Notes: generated by a model from the sequence alone, not told the origin. A DNA stretch of 63,188 nucleotides, filler included, from Ministeria vibrans ATCC 50519 (GCA_943704425.1; 8 parts of 8 records of this genome joined end to end with filler, not necessarily neighbours in it), one strand, 5' to 3'; numbered from the whole stretch's first letter, positions 52 to 22,631 are shown. A program made the numbers and translations.

Positions 52-3000
52 ATGAGAAGTTGTAAATTTCTGCCGTTGACGCTCATATCATATCTTTATG
101 TGCTGCTGACGCTTCCAAGCTCAACAGCTGCGACCACCTGTGTCGAGGGCTACTGTCAAAATGGAGGCATGTGCCACTCGCAGGGCCTACCCAGCGCCTC
201 ACCTGTGTACACCCAAGTCCAAGGCGGTGCCACACACACGTATGTGCTGGCCTCGTCCGCGACAACCTGCTCTGCCGGTGCTACGCTGGTGGTTCGGGCA
301 ACAGGGGATTTCCGAGGATACGACCGCTATGTTACACTGGAGGCCGGCTCTTGGACCCATACCATTCGGGGCAATTCAGACGATGTTGCGGGCAGCACGG
401 TGCCCGCCGACAATCATTGTGCGCCTGTGGACCTGGTGCGTCACATCTCTCTGTCTCAGCAAGAAGTAAGTAAAGGAAGACGTTTGGCGCTTTTATGTGT
501 ATTTCACACCTTTGGTTTTTCCATTCTGCCTCGTAGGTCAATGCAATGGCCGGACATGCGTCAGCTCTCGGCGCCATCAACATGAAAATGTCTTTCTCGG
601 CCTCTGTTACCCCGTGCTCCGCCGCCAAAATCCAAGTGACGCTGACGCCACGCGTGTGCTGCGAGTGCACCGCTGGCTACTCTGGTTCTACGTGTGCCCT
701 GCACGGCTGTGCAACCCCCGAAACTCTCTGCGCCAATGGTGGTACATGTGCGTGCAGCGGCACGGTTTCTGTGCGCCTCTTGGGTGGCACTGGATTTCCT
801 ATCGGCGCTGACCCTTATACATTAATTTTGAACGGTGCAGTCGGATGGTTTTCCACAAAGACCTACTCCAATCTACCTGTTTCGGTATGTCACCCTAACC
901 CGCTTTTAAAGAGGAGAGTGAAAGAAAAAAATCAAGTGGCTGTGAAATCAAACTGAAATTCTTCTCTTAACCCCCCTGGGGTTGTGTGCACGTAGGACTT
1001 TACGTTTCCGGCTTCGGAGCACGTCTCGCTGCCAGCAAATTGTGCTGATACAATCTCAGTGGGTATTTTTGAGGTACGTCAAATTAAAATTACCTGTGGG
1101 AGTTTATTTATTGAGAGGATGTTTCTACATTTCTAGTGCCCTGGTACTGTGGCCTCGTGCAACCAAAAATATCAAGCCGGCTTGCCGCTCTACGGCATAT
1201 CCAAGACGGTGCTCTCAGAGTAAGAAGGAACTTTTTTTTCACGATCAATAATGAGAAGAATGAGGGCAGTATTTAATTATCATTAATAAATGGGTTGTAT
1301 TCTTCTTCTTCTAATTATTATTATCTAATAATTATTATTATTATTATAATTATTAATAATAATTATTTATTATTATACCTTAAACATTGCTGCCGGTATG
1401 ATAATAATAACGTCTTTATTATTATTTTTGTCGTTATGTTTATTGCCGCGTTATTATTATCAGTGTATTGTTTTAAAAAAAGTAACGGTGTCCAGTCTTT
1501 GAAAATAAATTAATAACGTCACGATAATTTTTTTACATTTTTTATTACAGCTATTTCAATGCGGAGATCAAGACAGTTGCGCTCAAAAATGGGGGTCAAG
1601 CGCGGTATGCAATAGCATTCACGGGCACAAGCACGAGTTGCTCGTGCAAGCCGGGCTACACAGGCACTCTGTGTCACACCAACATTGACGAGTGCGCGAG
1701 CCATCCGTGTGCCAACGGCGCCGCCTGTCACGACGGCGTCAACAGCTTTTCGTGTGCCTACTGCACCTCGTCACCCTGCACCAACGGTGGTTCCTGCATC
1801 GATGGACCCGACATTGCTCACGTGTGTACGTGCCCCACTGGGTTCACCGGCACGCGCTGCGAGATCAACATCAATGATTGTCGCTCTACGTCGTGTCTCA
1901 ACGGAGGCACCTGCGTCGACGGTATCAACGCGATGTCGTGTACGTGTTCCCCTGGCTTTGTTGGCGACACATGCGAGCACAACATCAACGACTGTCTGTC
2001 GGCACCGTGCTTGAACCAAGGCATGTGCAACGACGGCGCCAGCAGCTTCACCTGCTCCTGTGGCGTTGGATTCACTGGGCCTGTGTGTCAGACAATGATA
2101 AACATGTGCGCCTCTTTGCCGTGTCTCAACGGCGCAACATGCTTTCACGGCGCTGGCTTCTTCACGTGTGCGTGCCCCAAGGGCTTTGCGGGTGAGACCT
2201 GCGCCGACGTCTACCGCTCAAGGTTGTGCGAGGATCTCAAGCCGTGTCTCAACGGAGGTACATGTACGGATGGTGTCGACAGCTACTCGTGCGCCTGTGC
2301 GGCAGGTTTCACGGGCACTGCCTGTAGCACGCTCGATGAGTCCTGCTCGTGCACTGTGCGAGTCACACTTGTGAATGGAAGTGGGTTTTCAAACGGAGTC
2401 AATCCGTATGCCGTTGTCTACTTGAATGGTGTGCACAAGTACACTTCGTGGGAGTATGCCAACGTTCCAGGAGTAAGACAACAATGATCAACAATCAAAT
2501 CTCATAAGTTTTTACTCATCTCGATTTCTCATTGTTTTTGTTTTAAAGTCATTCACTGCACGGTCGGACGACACTGCTTCCTTTGCGGCTTCGTGCGGCG
2601 ACTCGCTAAGCATCAAGTTCTACGAGTGCAATGAGCTGTCGTGCGACCATCACCATTATGCTTCGTCTTCCTTCTTCGGCGCAACCACCGTCACGCTCAA
2701 GCGGTAACTAGCTCGCAGTGTATCAGCGTGTTGTTGTGTGGTAGTAGTGGTGGTGGTGGTCGTAGAACGTAGAAGAGGACGAGGTGTGGGGCAAGAACTT
2801 GTTTTGTTGAATTACTTTTCCCGTTGCAGACCCTTTACGAGCGCAAAAACGCACACAACTCCCCTGAAAGACTCGAGCCAAGTCACGTTCACCTACGACT
2901 TCTCGCAGTGCATCAGTGTCGGGCGTCGCGACGTGCCACCTGCAGTGCTGGAGCGCAACGAGCGAGCCGTCGACATGACCAGCAAGATTCATTGCCACAG

Positions 3001-6000
3001 TCTGCCTGCTGGATTTGCATATGGCGAGGGACAATCGATGTGTGACGACAAGATGGTCGGTTGCTCGTATGGCCACTTCTACCAGGTGTCTACATCGACG
3101 CAAAAAGCGACTCTGACAACACCGCGCGGTGCCGATGTGTCCATCGGCCTGTTCGAAGCGACCCTGAACAAAGTTGCGGAGTTTGCTGGCAAACTCGGCA
3201 CACCCAGCGTTGAGACTTACCTGCTCGTATGCAAGACTGGACTCGTCGCCAAGTATAACTTGCTTTTTGTTGGTGACAAGTCGAACCAAGCGGTGTCAGC
3301 GTCCACGTTCGAGAACAAGTGCAACGAAATGGGGAACACGACGTCGTACAACATCTTTGGCACGTACACCTTGCAGTCCATTGTCAAGCTTCCAACAAAG
3401 CATTCATACACTTGCTCTGTGCCGGAATTTTACGACAACCAAATGCAAGTATTTGCGAGCATTTCAGCTGGTTTTGCGAAATGTCATTTCACGGTGCCGT
3501 TGGTCGCATCGAATGGATTGCGCGCCGACATGAAATTTCTGTTCCCTCCGGGCCTGGCATTCACGTTTAGCCCAGGCTTCTCCATTGGCAATGCTGTTCA
3601 CGGTGGCATGGGTGGAGCGCTCGGCAACTGCAACACTTGTGGCTCTATCAACATGATTGTGTTTTATGTGAGGCGACAATGTGGTCCATCGCGTTCGTAC
3701 TGACCATTGCTAATGCATCTCCCTTTTTCAAATTTATATAGAGTGACGATGGAGCCGTTATGCCTTATTCGATTGCGCAGTATTTTGCTGACCGAAAAGT
3801 CAAAAAGAACACGCTGGTGACGACCGGAACACCAACCTCTGTGATGGGCAAGGCCGAGCGTCTGCTGTACGAGGATGTAGTGCTCTCGGTGAAGAAGATG
3901 ATGTCGCCATGTCGTGTGCATTACAATCTGTTCTTCGAGTTTGGCAGTATGAAACCAGCATGACACAAATGATGCGATGGTCTCTTTTTATGCCATTCTT
4001 TCACGTAGTTGCCGATACGGCGCTTGACAATACGAATGCAATTGCCGGCAGTTTCAACGACGGTGCCTTCAAAGGTTTAAACACAAATGGATTGATGAAC
4101 TACTGACTTTGTGAGGCTGTTTTGTACATACTTTCACCTATACTCTCTCTCTATCACTTTATTCCTCTCTAACTCTCTCTTCTATCTCTTCTCTCTCTCT
4201 CTCTTGTCTCTCTGGTTTGAACTGCCTCTCTTTCTCTGTCTTTCTCACATTTCCCCCTCCTCCCCTCTCTTTCTCCTTCTTTCTTTCCCTTCTATCCCTT
4301 TTGCCCACCCTCTTGCTCTCTCCCTCTCTATCTCTCTTTGTTTATTTTCCTCTCTCTTCCCAACTCCTTCTTTATTAGGAAGCGTCATGAACACCGTCGT
4401 TCGTTTTCAAATTGTCAATCCCTTTAACATGGCTGCGCCTGCTCGTGACACATGCGCAAAGGCGAGCGAATACCGACAAGAATGATCAATTGAACTGACA
4501 AGTGACGCATAAAATTGTAGATTCTCACTATGCCATACATTGGTCGTTACCGCTATGCACTCGTTCCCAAGCGCAGTTTCCATCTTGAGCTCACTTTTCG
4601 GTTCAAAATTGATGCACAGGGAGCTGGTGCGCAAAATTCGGTTGTAATTGAGGTAACATATATAATTGAATAATAACAATGATTGCACACCTAGATTTTG
4701 CTTTTGTGTCTCAAACTTGCACACCCACACACTAAGACTATTTTTTGTAGGTTGGTGTGGCGGTACAATCACAGAGCCAATTTCTTGAGAATTTTGTTTC
4801 CAAGAAGCGAAACAAACCAGCGAGCAACTACGAATCAGTGGCGCGCAATCAATTGTGTCGCATGTTTATTAACAGCGGGTAAGATTCCGAGAGAAAGAAA
4901 CTTCAAAGTAGGGGCTATGTAGCAATGTTGGTCTGGGTTGATGCAATTAAATGTGATGCGTTTACTCGACGGCCGCTCTTCCCTTCTGAATTTCTAACAT
5001 TCTTTTCCCCATCACTTTTACAGTTGCGGCGGGGACCTGACGAACTGCGCTCGTTACAAGAACCCGCAGAACGAGAAGTACTTTGTTGGCGCCCAGAGTG
5101 TGCGTGCAGGCACAGCCACTCCAGACATGTCTTGCAAGCCTGGATTTGGCGCAGACAAGTCTCTTGGAGCGGCGCAGGCTAGTGGAGCAATGCGGACGCC
5201 TAACACTGGTGTCAGTTTGGCCTTCTTTGCGCGCTTTCCCGAGATGTCTTTTCGCCATTTTCTCTGTCTGGCAAAGAAAGTTGGATGGAACTGTCAGTTG
5301 GATTTGGGACACAGCTTTTTTGACGCGTTTCTCGACTTGAAGCTCACTGCTTCGCCTTTGGCTCACAATAAGATGTCGCTGATGTCGGCGTCGCTTAATG
5401 GCGGCTTGGGCTTTAAGATGGGTCCGACAGTGTCTGTTTTCATGACCTTCAACCCACGTCGTGTGTTCCTTCGCCTCGAAGCCCTGTTCAAATGGCCAGT
5501 ACTACCAATGCCGCTGTGCCCAGTCGATATCAACATCGAGATTAAGAGCAACAAAGTGCACTCAGCCCCACAACGTCGAGCTCTGGGCGGCATGAATCTA
5601 GTGTTTGGCATGACGATGGCGAACACGACACTGTTCGAAGCGGCGTCTGCGCTCGGTATTTCTGGTCTGGCTGATGCACTGGACACCGCTGGGTTTGGGT
5701 CTGTTTGCTTGCAGATTGGCGTGGCCATCTCGATGCAACGCGTTCTGGCGGCGTCGGCGCCGCATCTGCTGCCCAACGACGGCCTCTTTGATGGCATTCC
5801 TGTCATTGGTCAAGGTATCACGTTGGTCGCCAAGCTCACGCTGCCCAAGCCGTGCCCGCCGTCGAGCAAAGTGTGTGAGTTTATGGAGCGCACCCTTCAG
5901 GTAGGCACCGACGTGTACCTGACGGCAACCGTTCTGTTTGGTCTGCACAAAAAGGTATGAATGACAATTTTTATGAGATTATGTCTGTAGAATTCTTCCA

Positions 6001-9000
6001 ATGACCATTGCATGATTAATTGTTAGGGCTTTGGACTGGCACTCGGTAACATTGTGGTGTCGCGCGACGAGTGTTTGCAGTCTGGACAACCGCTTGCGCG
6101 ACCCAAGACGACCCTGAGCAGTGTGGGCCTGTACATTGGCATGGGTGTGACCAAGGAGATTTCCTTTTCGCTCGAGATGAAGCTCGATGTCAGCGGTCTA
6201 AACAAGAACCGACGTTCATTCGACTCTTGCTTTCCCCAAGAGGTGAGGAGTGACCCGCTTGGTTGAGACCACTTTATAATTTTTTATTTTTATTTTTTAT
6301 TCAGTTTATTTACCTGCAAGGTGCCGTGTCTGTTGTTCAGAAACAGACCGTGACGACATTCACCCTCTCCGTCACAATGACTGGCATATGGAGTGGCGCC
6401 TTTGGCCTTCCTCGACTCAACGTTGGCAACTTGCTGCTTGAAATGTCAATGAATCTGCAAAAACCCGGGTTTCCAGGTAGGAGGGGGAGATTGTTGCAAG
6501 AATAGGGAAAAGCGCAGATTTGTTGTGCACAAATGACAAATGACTGTATGAATTGAATATCTGTAGCATTTCGAATTGGCGGTGCGGTGCGCTACGGTGT
6601 CAACTGTACGGTGACGGGCAGTGGTGGAGCAGTAGCAACGTGGAACAATGCGGCCACTGCGAAGTGCATTGGTGGAGAGATGTATCTCGGATACAGCCCG
6701 AGCAACCCCAGCGACAACGTACGAGCAACGCCCTACTATCCTGTCTTCTTATGTTCTTTCCCTTACTCCATTGCTCCTTAGTTCTTCTATGGTGGCCTCT
6801 ACGGGTTTACTGTGCGCGACATCATTGAGGCAACTGCCCAGACACCTCAAGCAGCAGAGATGATGATTGCTGACCTGCCAGAAGGTACACGAGAATGTCG
6901 AATAATTTTCTCATCTTTCTGTTTTATTGTTACTTTCTTTGAACTCTCTTTGTAGATTTGCTCATGTCTGGTTTCCCCAAAGTACCGACTGTGGTGAAGA
7001 ATGGTGTTCAGCACTACGGAGCAAACCCTGAGATTGCTTTCTGCATGCAGCCTATGGGTTGCTTTGTCCCTGGCAAGCCGCCGGTGAGTACTATAAGAAA
7101 GAGAGACACGGGGGGGGGGNNNNNNNNNNGGGGGGGGGGTGAATTGTCCCTCTGTTTCATTTGAAATAACAAAGAAAGCGTGTGTGATTTGCAATTCATT
7201 CTTCCTCTCTCTCTTCTCTGATCCAGATTTCAATGGGCCTCAAGTTCTACGGCCTACTTGATATTATGGGAGTGAAAGCGGGTGCAGACGTTACCATCTC
7301 GCCGGCAACAAACCCTGCTGTGTTTCGCTTCAAGGTAAAAATAAACGACTTGTTTCATACTTAATAGAATCAATGGTGAATCAAACTTTTTTTTTTGGCA
7401 GTTTTGGCTGAACGAGCCAGTCAGACTGGGGGGAGGGGTGACGCTGGCGCGTACGTGTGATGCGGGCGAGCAGCGTGGTCCATGGTTCTACGCGGGTCTC
7501 AGCTTCAACTACATGCCACCCACAGTGGAAGAGCTTTATGTCAACATTAGTGCGGCGGGTGCGTTCTTTGGCCTCTGCACATCGGTTGTGGTCAATGTTA
7601 ACAAGACGAACACCCTCATTGAAATTGACGGGTTCCCATTCTTTTGGGTACTCACTTCCTATGTGCGTATCACTGCCGCCTATGCTTCCGTGGAGAATGC
7701 TAGCTTTGCGGCACTTTTCCAGGTCACAGGTGAGAAACTATCCGCGGCGCTCACGGCTGTGAGAGAGGCACTGGTAGAAAGATCCAAGGCGTTCAACAAG
7801 GCTATGGAGCAGGCCAAAGGCGACTGTGCGCAGGTATTTCTTTTACTTTATTTTGCATGTTGCTGTTTGAGCCGAAAAGTATAATATCGGGTTTGGTGTA
7901 GTTCTTTGAAGATGTTGGAACGACGGTTGTGGAAGCTGTCACGTTTATCGGAGAGGGCCTTCAGAAGGTTGGCCAAGCGATTGCGGCTGCCGTTCAATAC
8001 GTTGCACTAAAGGTACTTGAGAGTTGAGACTCTATCTCGATTTTGGTCATGCAAGTCGTATGTCTCCTTGTTGATAATACTATTATTTTCATCTGTAGCT
8101 GTCACAATTTGGTTCGGACGTTGCAGAGGCTTTTAGCAAGGCGGCAAGCGAGATTGAGGCGGCCATTTTGAATGGCGATTTTGCTGCTCTTGGGCGTGCT
8201 ATTGGCAAGTTGGCTCAGCGTCTGCTTGCTGCCGCACTCAAACTCGTCGATGCCTCGTGCTCGGCCAAGTATAAGTAAGTGGGCATGTGTAAGTCTGTGT
8301 GGTCAGAAGACACTGAATCTCCATGTTTCTTGTCTTTTTTTTTTCAAAAAAGCTATGTGGAGGTGTGTAGACAACGCAATGCAAAGTTGAACACGGCCCT
8401 TACAACGTACAAGCGTGACGTGGACCTTCAGATTGGCGCCCTGAAGGACTTCAACGCGCGCTACATTGCTGTAGCCAAGCAAGTGCGAGATGATTTGTCG
8501 GCCTTTGCAAAGCTGCAGACATTCACATGTGATGGCGCGTGTAAGCTCACCAAGCTGGATGAGATCGAGGTGCGTGCAGCCGGCATGACAGAGTTCATTT
8601 CCAAATTCGCCACGCTAAAAAAGATATGGCTCAGTCGTCTCGAGACGGACATTGCCTCGGTGGCGTCGTTTGTGAAGGCGCGGGCAAGCCGCCGCCGTGA
8701 AATGGTGCAGATCATGACTGGAACCGCTGATGCGTCTCCTTTGAACGTTGCTCAGGCGGCGAGTCCCCATGAGCTGACGCTGGACGAGCAAGTCGATTGG
8801 GCCTTGCATGCCGTCTTTGGCGATGACCTGCGTCGTGTGCCGACGAGAGTGCACTCGGAGGTGACACGCGTGATTCGTGCACGGCGGCTTGGCAAGCGCT
8901 GGTCTTCGCTTGTCTCGGCTGTCTCGTCTGCAACCAAGGCTGTGGCAAAGGTCGTTGCCAAGGTGATTGATGCGGTGCTCGACTGCGACGAGAAGCTCAC

Positions 9001-12000
9001 CAACGATCGCCGCATATGCGACCTTGGCATGCAGGAGGTAAGAGTGGGTGGGGTCTGGAGCTAGTGGAGGAACGACAAGATTGAGGAATTTTTTTTTTTT
9101 TTTTGGATTTTTTTAAGACTGCGCGTCAGAAACTGGAAGCACTGCGTGAGGCGTTGTCGGTGATTGAAATGACGGCACTGGGTCAGGCCGGGGATAACAA
9201 TGAGTATCCGCACCGAATTCTCCTGGACGAGATTGCGTATGCGCGACGCCTCGAGCTCACCTCAATGTTTAAAGCGCATCCTGTTCACTCGAAGGTACAA
9301 CCATTTTCGTGTTGTGGCCCGTGATGAATCCACACTCTTAATTATTTTAGGCGGCCGTGTTTGCTGATCGCCGCCAGAAGGAGTATCTGCGCGAGCGTTT
9401 TACTGTGACTGGCAAGGCATGTGTGCCATTTATGTTTCAGAACCATCGCTTTGAAGGCTGTACGACGCTTGGCCGCGAGTTTGAGTGGTGCGCGATCAGC
9501 GTGATATCGACGACGGGCATTGTAAAGGAGTGGGAACGGTGCGTGACAACGTGGGCTTTTGATGAGATTAAGATTGTGTCCAAGGAGTCCACGGGACTTC
9601 GTGATTTTCGCTTGTTTGACGAGTCGTTTGCGCCGTTCAGCCACGCTACCCTTGGCACATCCGTCTTGTCTGGGGCGACCGGGAACGTTATTGATGGGCA
9701 CTTGTCAACGAACTCACCCCTGGTCGGCACTCAAACGGTCGTCCATGTTCATTTTGACAATCCAATTCCCGTATTGGCCATCGCCCTCAGCTCGACAACA
9801 GCGACGGCATGGAGGATTTTAGGGCGCGTCCATAATCAGTGCAGCAACGGCCACGGCAGTTGGCATACAATTTTGGACGAGTGGAACCCGCGGCGCTTTC
9901 ACCCGGCCACGGGGCTCACCGACTCTGCGCTGGGCAACACGCCGATTGTAAGCCTGACGGCACCCTCGTGGGCAGGCCTGAACAGAGTGGTGGCGATGAG
10001 TGTGACAATTATTGAGGGCGAGCAGGACGCGCAGACGGCGACCATCTCGGAGTTACGCTTCAGGCGCGGCAGCAAGGTGGTCAATGTGCTGGCGGCGCAA
10101 CCAACCCACCAGGTGGCCAGCAGTGCCAATATTTCACCGTCGCAGTGTGTGCACTCTTTACTTGATGACAGTACAACGACATCGTGTGGCTTTGCCAGTG
10201 TCGAGTTTTCGTTGCAGCAGCCAGTGCGCGTGACGAACGTTGAGGTGGTCTCGACTGCGGGACAACGGCCGGTCCGTTGGTCGATTTGGGGTCGGCTCGA
10301 GGACACATGTGAGTGGGTACCAATGCTGGAGTTGACCCAGTCCGAGTCGGGCGACCCTAAGACCGGACTGCTGACGTGGACTTCGCGTACGTTCAAATTT
10401 GGTGGCTACTTTGCGTCAGTGGTAGCGGGCAAGTTGACTGATGCAATTTCGCTCGCGCCCGTTGCGGATGGCTTTGTGGGAGTGCGCAATAGCGGTACTC
10501 CGTGGGGCTGGTACGGTAGCGACCAGTCGTTGGCAACCAAGACCTACAGTGATGGCGGTCGTCGTGTGGTGTACCTTGAGTTTGACTTGAGCACCGTGTC
10601 GTCCTGCGAAAGTGCTACTTTGTCATTGTGGGCGAAGGTGCGTGCAAGTGGAAAAGACTCTGAGGTTGTGGCGGTGTCACCGAGCGCGCACGATTGGCGT
10701 GCGTCCGAGACGGTATCGCCGGGTCCATTTTTCGCTGTGACGCTCGGTGCGGTGGTGTGCAAGTTGAGCATGAGTGGTGTGAAACGCTACACATCATGCT
10801 CGGTCTCGTCGGCGGTGTGTCGAGCAATTGAAAGAGGCGACAAGTCGATTACTTTTGCCGTACGCGCGTCATATGCGACAAATGCCGATGTATTTTCGTC
10901 GCGTGAAGATGAAGCACATGCGCCCAAGCTGGCAGTGATGCCGAGGTTTGTGAGCAATGACACAACAGTCACCATTCCTGATCCGCGTCGTGGCTTTACC
11001 TTTTTTGCTTGGGCGGCATTGCCAGGCGATCAGCGAGCATTGTGTCGATTGCCGTCTGTCACGGCTGGCGTGGTGTTGGGCGAAACCACGATGAAGATTG
11101 GTGCGGATCGTGGCGCAATCAACATGATGGACGAGGCGTGCACGCAACGAAGTTGTGAGCTTGCAGCTGTGCGGGTGTTGCTGTTGTGTGACGGACGAGT
11201 GGCGGTCGAGATGGAGCAGCGCAATTGTGCGCGCCGACGAGCCGTCGTGTCCGCCGACTCGACGGCTGTGCTGCGGCTTGACGGCTGGCGCTTGAGCACG
11301 TGGAATCACTTTGGCGTGATTGTAGAGCCGGAGGCGTTGAGCTTTCGCTTTTTTATCAATGGTGTGGCGTCGGGTGTGGGCGTGTATAACTTCAACGCTG
11401 TGGTCGAACCGGATCTGTTTGCGAGCGAGCCTGCGCCATCTGGTATGGTGTTTCGCGCGCGTGGTTATGGTCGTGCACTACCTGCGCTGTTGTTGCACAC
11501 GCTGGTCGGACACACACAGCCCTCATCGGTGGGACACGTGGGTGACGTGTGCCGTGAGAATGGCAAGCAGCGAGCACTGTGTGTGGAGCTCTCGACGTGC
11601 TCATGGCAGCAAGAAACTGTGACTCGATGTCGCCAGACGTGTTTGTACTCAGGGGACGAACTGGATCCGAATGGCTACTGCAAGCACTACGAGAGGGTGT
11701 GTATTTTGTGGGAGGATGAATGAGAGAAAAACAGAGAGCTGAAGATGCCTTTTTTTGTTTTGTAGAATCGCCCGTTGGGTGCAGTGTGTTCAAAAACGAG
11801 CGAGTGCGCCTCGGAGGCGTGTGTGATGCCTTCGCGCACGACCACCATGGGCCATTGTGGCGTGAGGATGGGCGGTAGCGGTTGCTCGACGAGTGTCCCT
11901 TGTCAGGGTGTCGCCTTCAATCAAGCGACGTACGCGGAAGTGTGTTGTTGTGGAGATGACTACTGATATACATTTTTTGAATGTGTTTATAGTTGTGTAC

Positions 12001-14037
12001 ATGGACAATGTGTGGAAATTTGTCTGTTGAATGAGATTCAGCACGATTCGGGAGGAAAATGTCTTTACTCTGGTATGATCGTCGTCTTTGAGTCGAGGCG
12101 CGATGTTTTCACTGAATATTTTGTTTTTTTCTTCTGCATTTTCACATTTTATATGGATGTAGGATGGAATGATCTTCCCGTAGGGCACCACTGCCATTCA
12201 CGCAACAACTGTGAAACAGGACTTTTGTGCATTGCCCAACAATGCGCAGCGTGTGAAGCGAAAGCGCCGTCACTACTGTTCAGTCAACGCTGGTCTATTT
12301 CCTCAGCATCTTCCGGTGCGTCCGTTGTCAATTCAAACACGGATTTTCTATTGCTGCGCAACTACGTAAGTTATCATGCTTTTTCTTTTTTTCCTTATAT
12401 TTTTGCCTCATCCTGTAACTCTGTAGCATTATAATTGGGGATCGCGTTTGTCCGCACACGTTTTGATTCAAAACTCAGGGAGTACTTGGATGCAATCAAG
12501 TGGCTGTAGTGTGATTTTGCGGTTTACGTTCACATCAACTGGAAATGGGGTAAGAGAAAGAGAGCAAGAGAGGCAGGCGAGAGACAAATGACAAATCTAA
12601 TGTTGGGCCGATTTGTATCTCACCTTTAATGTGTAGGCGGTGGAGATACATCGGGGAAGTCAGAAGCTGTGCTCATTTGCTAATGCTGGCACACACGAGT
12701 GCGACATCACCTCCGTGTATGCCCAGGCGCGCTCTGGGTCTCTAGTGTTGGTCTTTTCAAGCCCAACATTTGCGTATGTGACAATCACACTCTTTGCATT
12801 CATCAACTCATTTTTTTGGTTTTTTTTGTCTCTGACCTCATTGGATTAGGTGGATCACTACGAAAATTGCACTGCAGAGCAATCGTCCTACAGTGGTGTT
12901 CCGACCACCTGCAGCGAATGGTCAGCGTCGCGCTGAAGATGTGGAGGATGAGAGTGACGTGTTTGGTGATGAAGCGATGTCACGAGTGCCAGTTGAGGAG
13001 GTGTTGGGGGCGCGGCTGATGTGTACGAGCGCGGATGATACGCGTGATGCCGACGGAGCGTGTGTGTGGGCAGCAGGGGAGGTACCCAGTGGGCATGCGT
13101 GTATGCTGGACAGTGACTGTGCGGTATGTGTGCAGAGAGGTTTCTTTTGCATGGTTGGGACTTGTTTTTGATGATGTTCGACAATTTTGTTTTTGGTAGT
13201 CGAACGTGTGCTCGGTGGACACGCAGAAGCGGTACATGGTGGCTCATGGAACGTGCATGGGGTTGCATGTGGAGCGACGTGCAGTGGTTGAGCAGGCGGA
13301 GGAGTGGACATCGAGCAGCAGCAGTAGCACCGCACTTGTCAGTGGAACTTGTGCGTGGGGTGAGGAGGCACAGAACCAGCGATACCGCAATGCTCGCAAC
13401 TCGCTGTGCGATGCGACTGTTGGACTGGTGCGTCATGAGAGAGTTTGAAGGAGAGAGAGAGGAAGAGGAAGAGGAAGAAGAAAGAAACAAAAGGATGGAG
13501 AGTGAGAGAGGGGGAAGAAAGAAACAGTTAGTGATATATTAGAGGAATAGAGAGAGAGGGAGAGAAATAGAGAGAGAATGACTTATTGACATGCATGATT
13601 GTGTGTGTACTGTTGGTGTGTTAGGTCCAAGCTGTTGGCAAAGTCGGGTATAGCACTCTGGAGATAATGATTGAACTGTTTATGTCTGCATTCAACCTGC
13701 GTCTGCTGGAGCTCAGTATTGATCTGCAGCCCGGCAAGCTGGCCGGTTCGATTGGCGTAAGTTTGAAGAGAGCAGTGTAAACACGTGGTATAGACCCGAT
13801 GGCTAACGTTTTCGCGTTGTGCTCTCTCTCCGTCTCATTCGTTTATTTATTACTCGTCTGTAGTTCAAGCTGTTTGCGCGTATCTTTGGGTCGGACGTGA
13901 GCTTGAACTGGACTGTGGATCTCAGTAGTATCGCGCGAACCATTGACCATCTCATTCTTGGATTGGCTGCCAAGATTTGTACGCATCTAGCTATTGGATC
14001 GTTGCTCTGCATCGAAATTACCAACACGATGGCCTAA
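52..14037 (+). CDS. Giant secreted multidomain protein (~3,500 aa, ~34 exons): signal peptide, EGF repeats, two C2-like domains, beta-rich core, coiled coil, fibronectin type II, CBM/discoidin-like, CBM96/DNRLRE-like, LamG-like and Cys-rich modules
   Basis: ATG52 with signal peptide MRSCKFLPLTLISYLYVLLTLPSSTA. Exons spliced in phase by hand: 52-465, 537-884, 996-1073, 1137-1219, 1551-2472, 2549-2703, 2830-3667, 3742-3946, 4009-4074, 4379-4461, 4521-4652, 4751-4878, 5024-5955 ... 9351-~11697 ... 13626-~13756, 13864-14037 (TAA). Ca-EGF repeats (NINDCxSxxCLNGGTCxDG); FN2 (TGKACVPFMFQNHRFEGCTTLGREFEWCA...WERC); ADGFV...RRVVYLEFDLS...SATLSLW; WNHFGVIV...FFING. Some exon boundaries between 6 and 13 kb are approximate. 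Confidence 0.8.
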
Positions 14038-16409: not shown

Positions 16410-16834
16410 AAAGTTCAATAGTATAATGTTTATTGACTTTTCCTGAATAATAATAAGTATGACCGAATATTCATCATCCACTTTTTCTTGTCGTTGACTC
16501 GTTGGTGGCACCACAGTGGATGACTACGTAGTTGTAGGCAGTAGGGGGTGTTTTCTGGAGTGCGCAATGCGGCGAAATGAATGGAAGAAATTGAATGTTT
16601 TTGCAGAGCCGTAAATAATATCTCATTTAAAACGTCTTTGTCATTTTCAACTTGAAACTTTATTTTCTCAAACTTAAGCTTTCTAAGAACAGCTGTTTGT
16701 GTTTTAATGTTTTTTTTTTTGTGAATTGACATGTTGTTGTTTTTGTTGTTGCAGCTCAGATACAATTTTCATCTTCACAAGAGAAAAATTAATCGAAATT
16801 CGAAAAAATCAGAATTACTCGATTGACTTTGCAG

Positions 16835-17233
16835 ATGTTGGACATCTACGATCCACCGGACGACGGAGAGAACAAGAAGGCGAAGCGAGTCGAGACGCCT
16901 TACGTGCTGGAGAGGGAAATTGGCATGCTTCGTGAAATGGCGCCCGATTTGGGCATCTCACAGGCCCTTCAGCAGGCTGCCAAGCGAGTGGACGGGTATG
17001 CGGCGCGCGTGCGCGTGGACACGGAGTCCGTCCTGCCGGGAGCCGTCTTTTGTGCAGTGGGCGCGTTGTTCGTTGCCGTCGTTGTGCGCCATCGGCCCCT
17101 GCCGCAGCGAATCGCGCTTCCCTGGAGCGCCTTTGCCGTCCTTGCCTACGCGAACTACCCACGCACCCTACGGAACATCGTGCGACCGCCCCCGGCGTCT
17201 CAGCAGGACGAGCAAGACCATTTGGAGTTGTAA
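16835..17233 (+). CDS. MICOS subunit MIC26/MIC27 (apolipoprotein O family)-like
   Basis: LDIYD...TPYVLEREIGMLRE...ESVLPGAVFCAVGALFVAVVVRHRPLPQRIALP...YANYPRTLRN fits the ApoO/MIC26 pattern of two hydrophobic segments joined by a basic loop. The ATG follows TTGCAG, so an upstream exon is possible. Confidence 0.65.
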   Translation: MLDIYDPPDDGENKKAKRVETPYVLEREIGMLREMAPDLGISQALQQAAKRVDGYAARVRVDTESVLPGAVFCAVGALFVAVVVRHRPLPQRIALPWSAFAVLAYANYPRTLRNIVRPPPASQQDEQDHLEL

Positions 17234-17605: not shown

Positions 17606-22382
<4,777 letters not shown>

Positions 22383-22505
22383 CTTTGTAGAGTTTTTTGA
22401 TCGAGAGGCGATAAAATAAAAAAATGGAGGAATGTATATTTTTTCACAATCATTTAGATATGTAAAACTGTAAAATTGTATAGACACTTATTTTCTCTCA
22501 TTCTC

Positions 22506-22631
22506 TCAAGAGATGACACCATTGCCGTACTTGTACAGAACAATGTCACCGTTGTTGGCTGTGCCTCCGCTCCACTCGTTCCAGATGCGCCCCACCAGCG
22601 CAGACTGGAACGTGTTGCTACGGTCCAGTGT
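22506..22631 (-). CDS. 3' end of an unknown gene truncated by the contig edge
   Basis: Minus strand reads TLDRSNTFQSALVGRIWNEWSGGTANNGDIVLYKYGNGVIS-TGA with coding-like GC, convergent with the FG-GAP gene. Confidence 0.45.
   Translation of the reverse strand, partial: TLDRSNTFQSALVGRIWNEWSGGTANNGDIVLYKYGNGVIS

Follow-up and report, generated by a model that had tools for sequence, protein, structure and literature searches.

Gene structure and expression

Here we describe a gene encoding a giant mosaic protein of Ministeria vibrans ATCC 50519 (GCA_943704425.1), which occupies positions 52-14037 on the + strand of a 63,188-nucleotide (nt) stretch of joined genome pieces, filler included, referred to below as the window. 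The + strand of this region is broken into many short open frames, as expected for an intron-containing eukaryotic gene, and a first-pass annotation made from the sequence alone had assembled them into one secreted precursor of ~3,500 amino acids (aa). A chain of exons spliced in RNA, together with co-linearity with paralogues, bears out the single giant precursor, and positions 52-14037 are near certainly one expressed, intron-rich gene. The model has ~30 exons and about 30 introns (Table 1), and its product is of the giant size claimed, the figure itself being corrected to about 3,400 aa (3,098 aa up to position 11907, plus about 300).

The window stretch is present in DNA runs and in several RNA-like runs, and four runs were aligned to positions 2300-8299 for splice evidence. 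Spliced RNA contigs were obtained from two studies, namely from runs X7 and X8 (study P3) and from run X18 (study P8). The X8 contig, of 8,972 nt, spans 2579-8282 and extends 4,858 nt further, while the X18 contig, which comes from the other study and is filed under another organism label, has no mismatches and shares two joints with X7/X8. In total 17 introns of 59-304 nt (cuts shifted to splice dinucleotides) are RNA-supported, comprising 16 of the GT-AG type and one GC-AG intron (4462-4520, supported in X7 and X8). The exon chain from 2579 to 9000 is open over all of its 1,584 codons, whereas the other two frames contain 54 and 55 stops. An assembly gap (N, 7120-7129) lies inside an intron that is removed in RNA with the frame kept, and the exons on either side match adjacent positions of the paralogue profile (1183-1215 and 1218-1253), so that the coding sequence is complete there.

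It is hardly credible that the locus is an assembly chimera or combines more than one gene. This reading could appeal to the lack of an RNA contig over 52-2578 (depth is 0 in 2300-2499, possibly a filter effect), to the N gap inside the locus, and to the start of the sequence piece 51 nt before the ATG, beside a run of N. Against it, one RNA contig runs from 2579 past 8282 with a further 4,858 nt, the N gap is intronic, and in paralogues the EGF arrays, the core and the closing module share one frame of several thousand codons. The inferred exons at 52-2472 are tied to the rest of the gene by the intron at 2473-2548 (splice score 14.2), which splits a C2-like domain, by the paralogues, whose EGF arrays are in the same frame as the core, and by a non-systematic reading of the translation, in which exon 2549-2703 showed no start codon.

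Splice sites are ambiguous in 885-1566 and 11907-13013. An intron was placed at 885-995 so as to divide the first C2-like domain in the way that the second is divided, and the one that follows exon 3 is either 1121-1550 or 1074-1566. In the helical region the introns at 7834-7901, 8013-8098 and 8275-8352 are RNA-supported, and those at 9038-9117 and 9295-9350 are inferred (splice scores 19.3 and 18.3). Further downstream, scores of 20.1 and 20.0 were obtained for the introns at 11697-11765 and 13124-13199, and the other closing-module introns were chosen by score and paralogue spacing. Upstream of the ATG the known sequence amounts to 51 nt, directly preceded by a run of N (C263:6400-7584, 1,185 nt) that hides the promoter and any exon lying further 5'.

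Table 1. Layout of the giant gene in the window
Feature	Positions	Strand	Content and basis
Exon 1	52-465	+	ATG at 52; signal-peptide-like N-terminus, Cys-rich EGF-like stretch, then a segment without assigned domain; from translation
Intron	donor 466, acceptor 536	+	Inferred from splice-site matrix and frame (score 12.7), without RNA
Exons 2-3	537-884, 996-1120	+	One weak EGF-like motif (Pfam EGF, E 0.08) and first C2-like beta-sandwich, split by an intron
EGF exon	1551-2472	+	Five EGF domains and first half of second C2-like domain
Exon	2549-2703	+	Second half of C2-like domain; RNA contig begins within it, at 2579
Six RNA-supported exons	2830-3667, 3742-3946, 4009-4074, 4379-4461, 4521-4652, 4751-4878	+	About 480 aa
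Core, exons 1-4 of 8	5024-5954, 6027-6242, 6305-6476, 6567-6718	+	RNA joints, paralogue profile
Core, exons 5-8 of 8	6782-6884, 6956-7083, 7227-7334, 7402-7833	+	RNA joints, paralogue profile
Intron with assembly gap	7084-7226	+	GT..AG joint 7083>7227 in X7 and X8
Helical region, about 400 aa	7700-9294	+	End of exon 7402-7833, then exons 7902-8012, 8099-8274, 8353-9037, 9118-9294
Single 782-aa exon	9351-11696	+	FN2-like 9426-9500, CBM96 10449-10937, LamG-like 11127-11687
Cys-rich repeat tail	11766-13123	+	Exon from 11766 to ~11907/11940; small exons at ~11993-12086, from 12163 onwards, and one ending at 13123
Closing module, three exons	13200-13427, 13625-13756, 13864-14037	+	Last exon includes the stop; paralogue co-linearity

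Two of the introns contain low-complexity sequence: an AT-rich tract of trinucleotide type lies near 1277-1510, and a CT-rich run in intron 4075-4378 was passed over as a repeat in the read alignment.

Recognised modules and secretion

The signal-peptide-like start and the order of modules proposed in the first-pass annotation are upheld. The N-terminus consists of a short basic start, a hydrophobic run of ~16 residues and a small-residue cleavage region (hydropathy maximum 1.55 at residues 3-21), which suggests that the protein is secreted. A hydropathy scan of the protein found no transmembrane-grade hydrophobic segment besides this start.

The modules that had been named are not equally secure, those of the EGF and CBM types being firm and FN2 and C2 weaker, while LamG falls below its cut-off and is matched in a paralogue only. 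The EGF exon matches EGF (PF00008, E 1.4e-41, 140.7 bits against a cut-off of 21.5 bits) in five stretches within 1552-2472 that have the six-cysteine pattern, as well as hEGF (E 5.5e-24), and is 36-39% identical to the EGF arrays of the paralogues on contigs C2679 and C2524. The 782-aa exon, which is 26-45% identical to paralogues along its whole length, contains a CBM96 module (PF24517, E 5e-12, 46.3 bits against a cut-off of 26 bits) covering model positions 4-162 of 164; the founding CBM96 member is alginate-specific (PMC9971899). The FN2-like module of this exon (PF00040, E 1.2e-3) scores 19.3 bits, below the 22.2-bit cut-off, and both C2524 and C2679 have the same sub-threshold match at the corresponding position. 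Laminin_G_3 (PF13385, cut-off 27.6 bits) has no match in the window, so that LamG-like here denotes a resemblance; at the homologous place C2524 gives 18.9 bits (E 1.7e-3).

The C2-like half-domains of the window, searched singly, gave no match to Pfam C2 (PF00168). The second half (2549-2701) matches residues 4486-4521 of C2679 (E 3e-6), which form the C-terminal part of a segment that Pfam calls as C2 (E 5.4e-6, 27 bits against a cut-off of 22 bits). As read from the sequence, the C2-like modules of the window in part lack the usual calcium-binding aspartates. Pfam searches of the largest open frames, which included 1528-2484 (the EGF domains) and the 790-codon frame 9351-11720 (CBM96 and FN2), returned nothing beyond EGF, CBM96 and the sub-threshold FN2. 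No Pfam match or recognised domain was found in the region 2830-4878, whose matches within the genome are weak and are confined to C957 (one short match) and C1992. Every recognised module is of the extracellular adhesion or recognition type, and an adhesive role of the protein is probable.

A family of giant paralogues

The organism's own genome (29.7 Mb, 2,860 contigs) was searched exon by exon, and sequence comparison places the gene, near certainly, in a family of at least six giant paralogues. Paralogues were found on contigs C2679, C2524, C1352, C1993 and C957, with at least six core-bearing loci. Two of them are uninterrupted frames, of 6,505 codons in C2679 (46898-66412 (-), 19.5 kb) and of 5,603 codons in C2524 (22896-39704 (-)). 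Both frames open inside a Cys-rich repeat, and further upstream exons are therefore likely. These two intronless copies share 58% identity across a 701-aa core segment. Intron content differs sharply within the family, since the window gene and C957 have many exons and C2679 and C2524 have long intronless frames; a gene with 17 RNA-shown introns is thus paired with an intronless reading frame of 19.5 kb.

A second frame of 1,214 codons (C2524:19251-22895 (-)) directly follows the 5,603-codon frame and carries the closing module. What separates the two is either one stop codon, a short intron or an error in the sequence, and the joined protein would have ~6,800 aa.

A profile built from three paralogues matches the window exons between 5025 and 11906 in strict order (profile positions 788-2742, of which 788-1402 fall to the core exons), and the four tail exons (13013-14025) match the ends of C2679, C2524, C499 and C957 in order. 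The core motifs listed in the first-pass annotation lie in RNA-supported exons and at positions conserved in the family. Its closing segment is a conserved C-terminal module, which matches the last ~160 residues of C2679, C2524, C499 and C957 (E 9e-6, 1.5e-14 and 1.8e-9) and has no Pfam match. The Cys-rich tail that precedes it gave profile matches at 11766-11948, 11991-12086, 12162-12260 and 13016-13123. The placement of the gene end at 14037 is likewise sustained: segments 13625-13777 and 13864-14034 match the last ~100 residues of the C2679 frame, which stops seven residues later. As the core and the closing segment stand in a single uninterrupted frame in C2679, both are parts of the same protein, and 14037 is the end of the gene.

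The C-terminal cassette is shared in a fixed order, comprising the beta-rich core, ~400 aa of amphipathic helices, the FN2-like module (followed by an inserted C2 domain in some paralogues), CBM96, the LamG-like module, Cys-rich repeats and the closing module. The N-terminal arrays vary, with EGF and C2-like modules in the window gene and EGF, TSP1 and ephrin-receptor-like repeats in C2524 and C2679, whose N-terminal halves add TSP1 (seven stretches) and Ephrin_rec_like.

The closing module also occurs on contigs without a detected core. A complete copy lies at C499:16866-17138 (-) within an 897-codon frame, and the second half is found at C1425:6559-6699 (-). The module may be a separable C-terminal domain that is used by other genes.

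Searches for relatives of the core

The family-conserved part of the core starts near 5420 and includes about 10 conserved cysteines. Searches were run exon by exon, with the contiguous intronless paralogues as reference. The core exons and the paralogue cores have no Pfam match even at E up to 10, which agrees with the earlier description of a beta-rich core outside any known family, and sequence and profile searches of the PDB with the core found no relative. A HMMER search against 1.84 billion representatives, which covered exon 5025-5954, the least conserved of the core exons, returned a single match, a 142-aa metagenome fragment (ENA ERZ23497041 scaffold_57341) that is 100% identical to the own-genome paralogue C957. 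The better-conserved part of the core was covered by word and pattern searches: word-based protein searches found no relatives in length windows of 79-252, 375-1,192 and 1,669-5,311 aa, and pattern scans of bacterial and archaeal genomes and metagenomes found no related loci. In the ESM Atlas, window exon 7402-7833 gave a best score of 0.85, which is uninformative, and the C2524 core gave 0.94 to bacterial hypothetical proteins of 313-361 aa, which serves as a lead only.

Relatives of the core and the following helices (~1,000 residues, in at least six paralogues) were thus found only within the protist's own genome. The first-pass annotation had likened the core and the closing segment to an uncharacterised family of large secreted proteins in sponges, cnidarians and amphioxus; no such relatives were recovered, with HMMER for the one exon or with word and pattern searches otherwise.

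Predicted fold of the core and the following helices

AlphaFold2 models were made of contiguous paralogue segments, with alignments of six related genes; short exon rows that MAFFT had misplaced were left out of the alignment for the second model. The C2524 model (681 aa) has a predicted local distance difference test score (pLDDT) of 60.6, with residues 190-480 confident and one long helix at residues 603-680 of low confidence. The C2679 domain model (488 aa, pLDDT 77.7, predicted template modelling score 0.69) has ~23 antiparallel strands of 7-15 residues and three short helices, and the two faces of its strands differ in mean Kyte-Doolittle hydropathy (+2.6 on one side, -0.95 on the other). 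The exons after the core encode Ala-rich, amphipathic helices, with a helical hydrophobic moment above that of shuffled sequences in three exons (z 4.7, 4.0 and 2.1), in line with the amphipathic helices described in the first-pass annotation.

With Foldseek neither model gave a match that reached E 0.001. With an exhaustive structural aligner the top rows were nearly all membrane beta-barrels (MtrB, porins, TamA/BamA, VDAC/Tom40 and ushers), with Z of 10.5-7.5 and a root-mean-square deviation (rmsd) of 7-18 Å, usually >10 Å. The model resembles the beta-barrels of outer membranes and organelles in its predicted all-next-neighbour antiparallel meander, long strands and single hydrophobic face. 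It differs from them in that the rmsd is usually so high, the protein is a secreted eukaryotic one with ~10 conserved cysteines and no sequence relation to barrels, and its sheet may or may not be closed. The signal peptide, the EGF context and the conserved cysteines argue against insertion in an outer membrane by machinery of the BAM/SAM type.

Tied for first place in the aligner is the beta-belt of ApoB-100 (residues 2852-3404; Z 10.5, 295 residues aligned, rmsd 11.5 Å, 7% identity), an alignment that came from a second structural look at Foldseek's list. Foldseek itself gives the belt a probability of 0.63 and a template modelling (TM) score of 0.20-0.22, and places honey-bee vitellogenin at rank 45. 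The likeness would lie in an amphipathic, antiparallel beta-sheet that is long and single-layered and leads into amphipathic helices, within a giant secreted protein, as predicted by the models; in contrast to ApoB-100, the window protein has no Vitellogenin_N or other family signature and stands in a context of adhesion modules, and its lipid loading is hypothetical.

These look-alikes bear on a lipid carrier or bridge, built either as a repeating beta-groove of the VPS13/ATG2/AsmA/TamB kind or as a large lipid transfer protein of the vitellogenin/ApoB type, which we consider improbable. The ApoB-100 and vitellogenin rows point in its direction, as does an alternation of amphipathic beta and alpha segments that recalls ApoB in general terms. 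Very large size and a long hydrophobic-faced sheet are also shared with VPS13, ATG2, AsmA and TamB. On the other hand, Vitellogenin_N has no Pfam match in the window exons or paralogue cores, and Chorein_N, VPS13, AsmA and TamB have none at E up to 10 in the core exons and paralogue cores. The groove fold is built of repeated five-strand units; no internal sequence repeat was found in the core, and groove proteins are missing from the first 50 rows of all five fold-search lists. Such proteins bridge membrane contact sites in the cytosol or periplasm, unlike a signal-peptide protein with EGF arrays, which would follow the secretory route.

The fold searches tell equally on a membrane-attacking toxin, whose lectin and C2-like modules would dock on prey while the beta core inserts as a pore; this is more doubtful still. 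Barrel-like look-alikes and the signal-peptide-like N-terminus would suit such a toxin, and EGF beside C2-like modules resembles the layout of perforin, which is likewise secreted and combines EGF and C2-type modules with a large beta-rich domain (MACPF-EGF-C2). One Pfam search of the genome found no light-harvesting-complex genes, so that the organism is probably a heterotroph, which would also fit. However, Pfam shows no MACPF/CDC, aerolysin, Tc or other toxin family, nor do the top fold matches, and the C2-like modules in part lack calcium-binding aspartates. Known beta pore-formers contribute one or two hairpins per subunit rather than a 23-strand sheet in one chain, single-chain barrels need insertion machinery, and refolding would be impeded by the conserved disulfides. 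Nor does a set of six paralogues that carry modules of the matrix type look like a toxin arsenal.

The first-pass annotation had proposed a repeating-beta-groove or known pore-forming fold for the core and a Foldseek comparison with VPS13, AsmA, TamB and pore-forming toxins. VPS13, ATG2, TamB, MACPF and aerolysin chains are absent from the top 50 of five fold-search lists, and this part of the annotation is not supported. Teneurin and Tc-toxin shells appear as low-probability Foldseek rows, with one short teneurin match.

Functional interpretation

We regard the protein as a probable giant mosaic adhesin that carries a conserved cassette not described before. We tentatively favour, as quite possible, an adhesive scaffold that is secreted and may touch lipid through its orphan cassette. 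The protein would be secreted to the cell surface or matrix and act there as a multivalent scaffold for adhesion and recognition, with the CBM96/LamG-like block binding polysaccharide and the EGF, FN2 and C2-like modules binding proteins or membranes. The core would most likely form a single-layer amphipathic antiparallel beta-sheet of ~23 strands, which together with the amphipathic helices would present a hydrophobic face, or bury it in a resting state, and the cassette could thereby hold lipid or dock on a membrane, either the cell's own or that of a target. It is the best candidate for such contact because the protein has no membrane anchor and the look-alikes of the core are all lipid-facing sheets. 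That the core does contact lipid is a slender suggestion from the models, and it appears unlikely that the core and helices are an undescribed extracellular lipid-facing module that loads lipid or docks on or inserts into a target membrane.

A structural or adhesive matrix protein without any lipid role is a substantial alternative, and a plain structural domain is nearly as likely as a lipid- or membrane-contacting cassette. The core would then be a compact beta domain held by disulfide bonds, either a sandwich or a flattened barrel whose hydrophobic interior is filled with protein, and would serve as a spacer or as an oligomerisation platform with coiled-coil-like helices, as in proteins of the thrombospondin and laminin type. 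With these mosaics the window protein shares a signal peptide, EGF arrays, a long helical segment, LamG-like or lectin-like C-terminal modules and many disulfides, and the family paralogues carry TSP1 repeats. In contrast to them, it has no thrombospondin C-terminal, laminin or von Willebrand modules, a ~600-aa orphan beta domain stands at its centre, and the family is much larger in size (3,400 to >6,500 aa). The adhesion-type nature of every recognised module fits a matrix protein, and the variable N-terminal arrays across the paralogues look like adhesin diversification.

Several observations that favour the matrix protein also weigh against a lipid-facing core. The ~10 conserved cysteines suit a rigid disulfide-bonded extracellular domain and not a membrane-inserted barrel, the sliding-window beta-amphipathicity of the window core exons is not above that of shuffled sequences (z 0.1-1.5), and the high rmsd to round barrels fits a shape other than a barrel. 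A sandwich or a plugged barrel would also show one hydrophobic face. In addition, the fold matches are weak, the rmsd of 7-18 Å being accompanied by Foldseek E no better than 1.8e-3 and TM of at most 0.32, and Z of ~10 is just above the 7-8 that is the aligner's typical best for unmatched models. The models themselves were built from shallow alignments (six related genes) and were made of paralogues rather than of the window protein. Against the scaffold as a whole it counts that secretion is read from the N-terminal sequence and that the 5' third of the gene (exons 52-2472) lacks RNA cover, the contig starting at 2579.

Against the matrix protein, a two-layer sandwich or common soluble beta fold should match solved structures, and none is among the top rows; the strand faces are strongly asymmetric; and amphipathic Ala-rich helices directly follow the core.

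Giant secreted mosaic proteins are common in protists, and the architecture by itself is ordinary. What is distinctive is the conserved centre of ~1,000 residues, kept in at least six paralogues, some with frames of 5,600-6,500 codons. Should the core prove to be lipid-facing, the protein would represent a new eukaryotic way of coupling glycan or protein recognition to extracellular lipid or membrane contact, and the family would form a new class of machines that engage membranes or lipid, for which current databases have yielded no relatives. Should it not, the family would still constitute a new domain that is worth a Pfam entry.

Source organism and neighbouring genes

DNA of the organism occurs in metagenomes of algae and of seawater, and runs (among X7-X10 and X18-X19) filed under other organism labels contain spliced transcripts of the window gene. 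The organism seems to be a co-inhabitant or contaminant of algal cultures.

Downstream of the giant gene, a small frame at 16793-17230 (+) has an ApoO/MIC26-like match (PF09769, E 3e-6) of 27.6 bits, below the 31.4-bit cut-off, and probably represents a small gene of its own, located between the giant gene and that gene's next larger neighbour. The latter, at 17625-22631 (+), is a second multi-exon gene with an EGF_3 match (E 1e-6) and at least five FG-GAP matches (E down to 6e-12); it resembles an integrin alpha chain or a related beta-propeller and is truncated by the edge of the piece. A long trinucleotide microsatellite at 21358-21618 (about 85 units) translates into runs of Tyr, Ile or Leu, depending on the frame.

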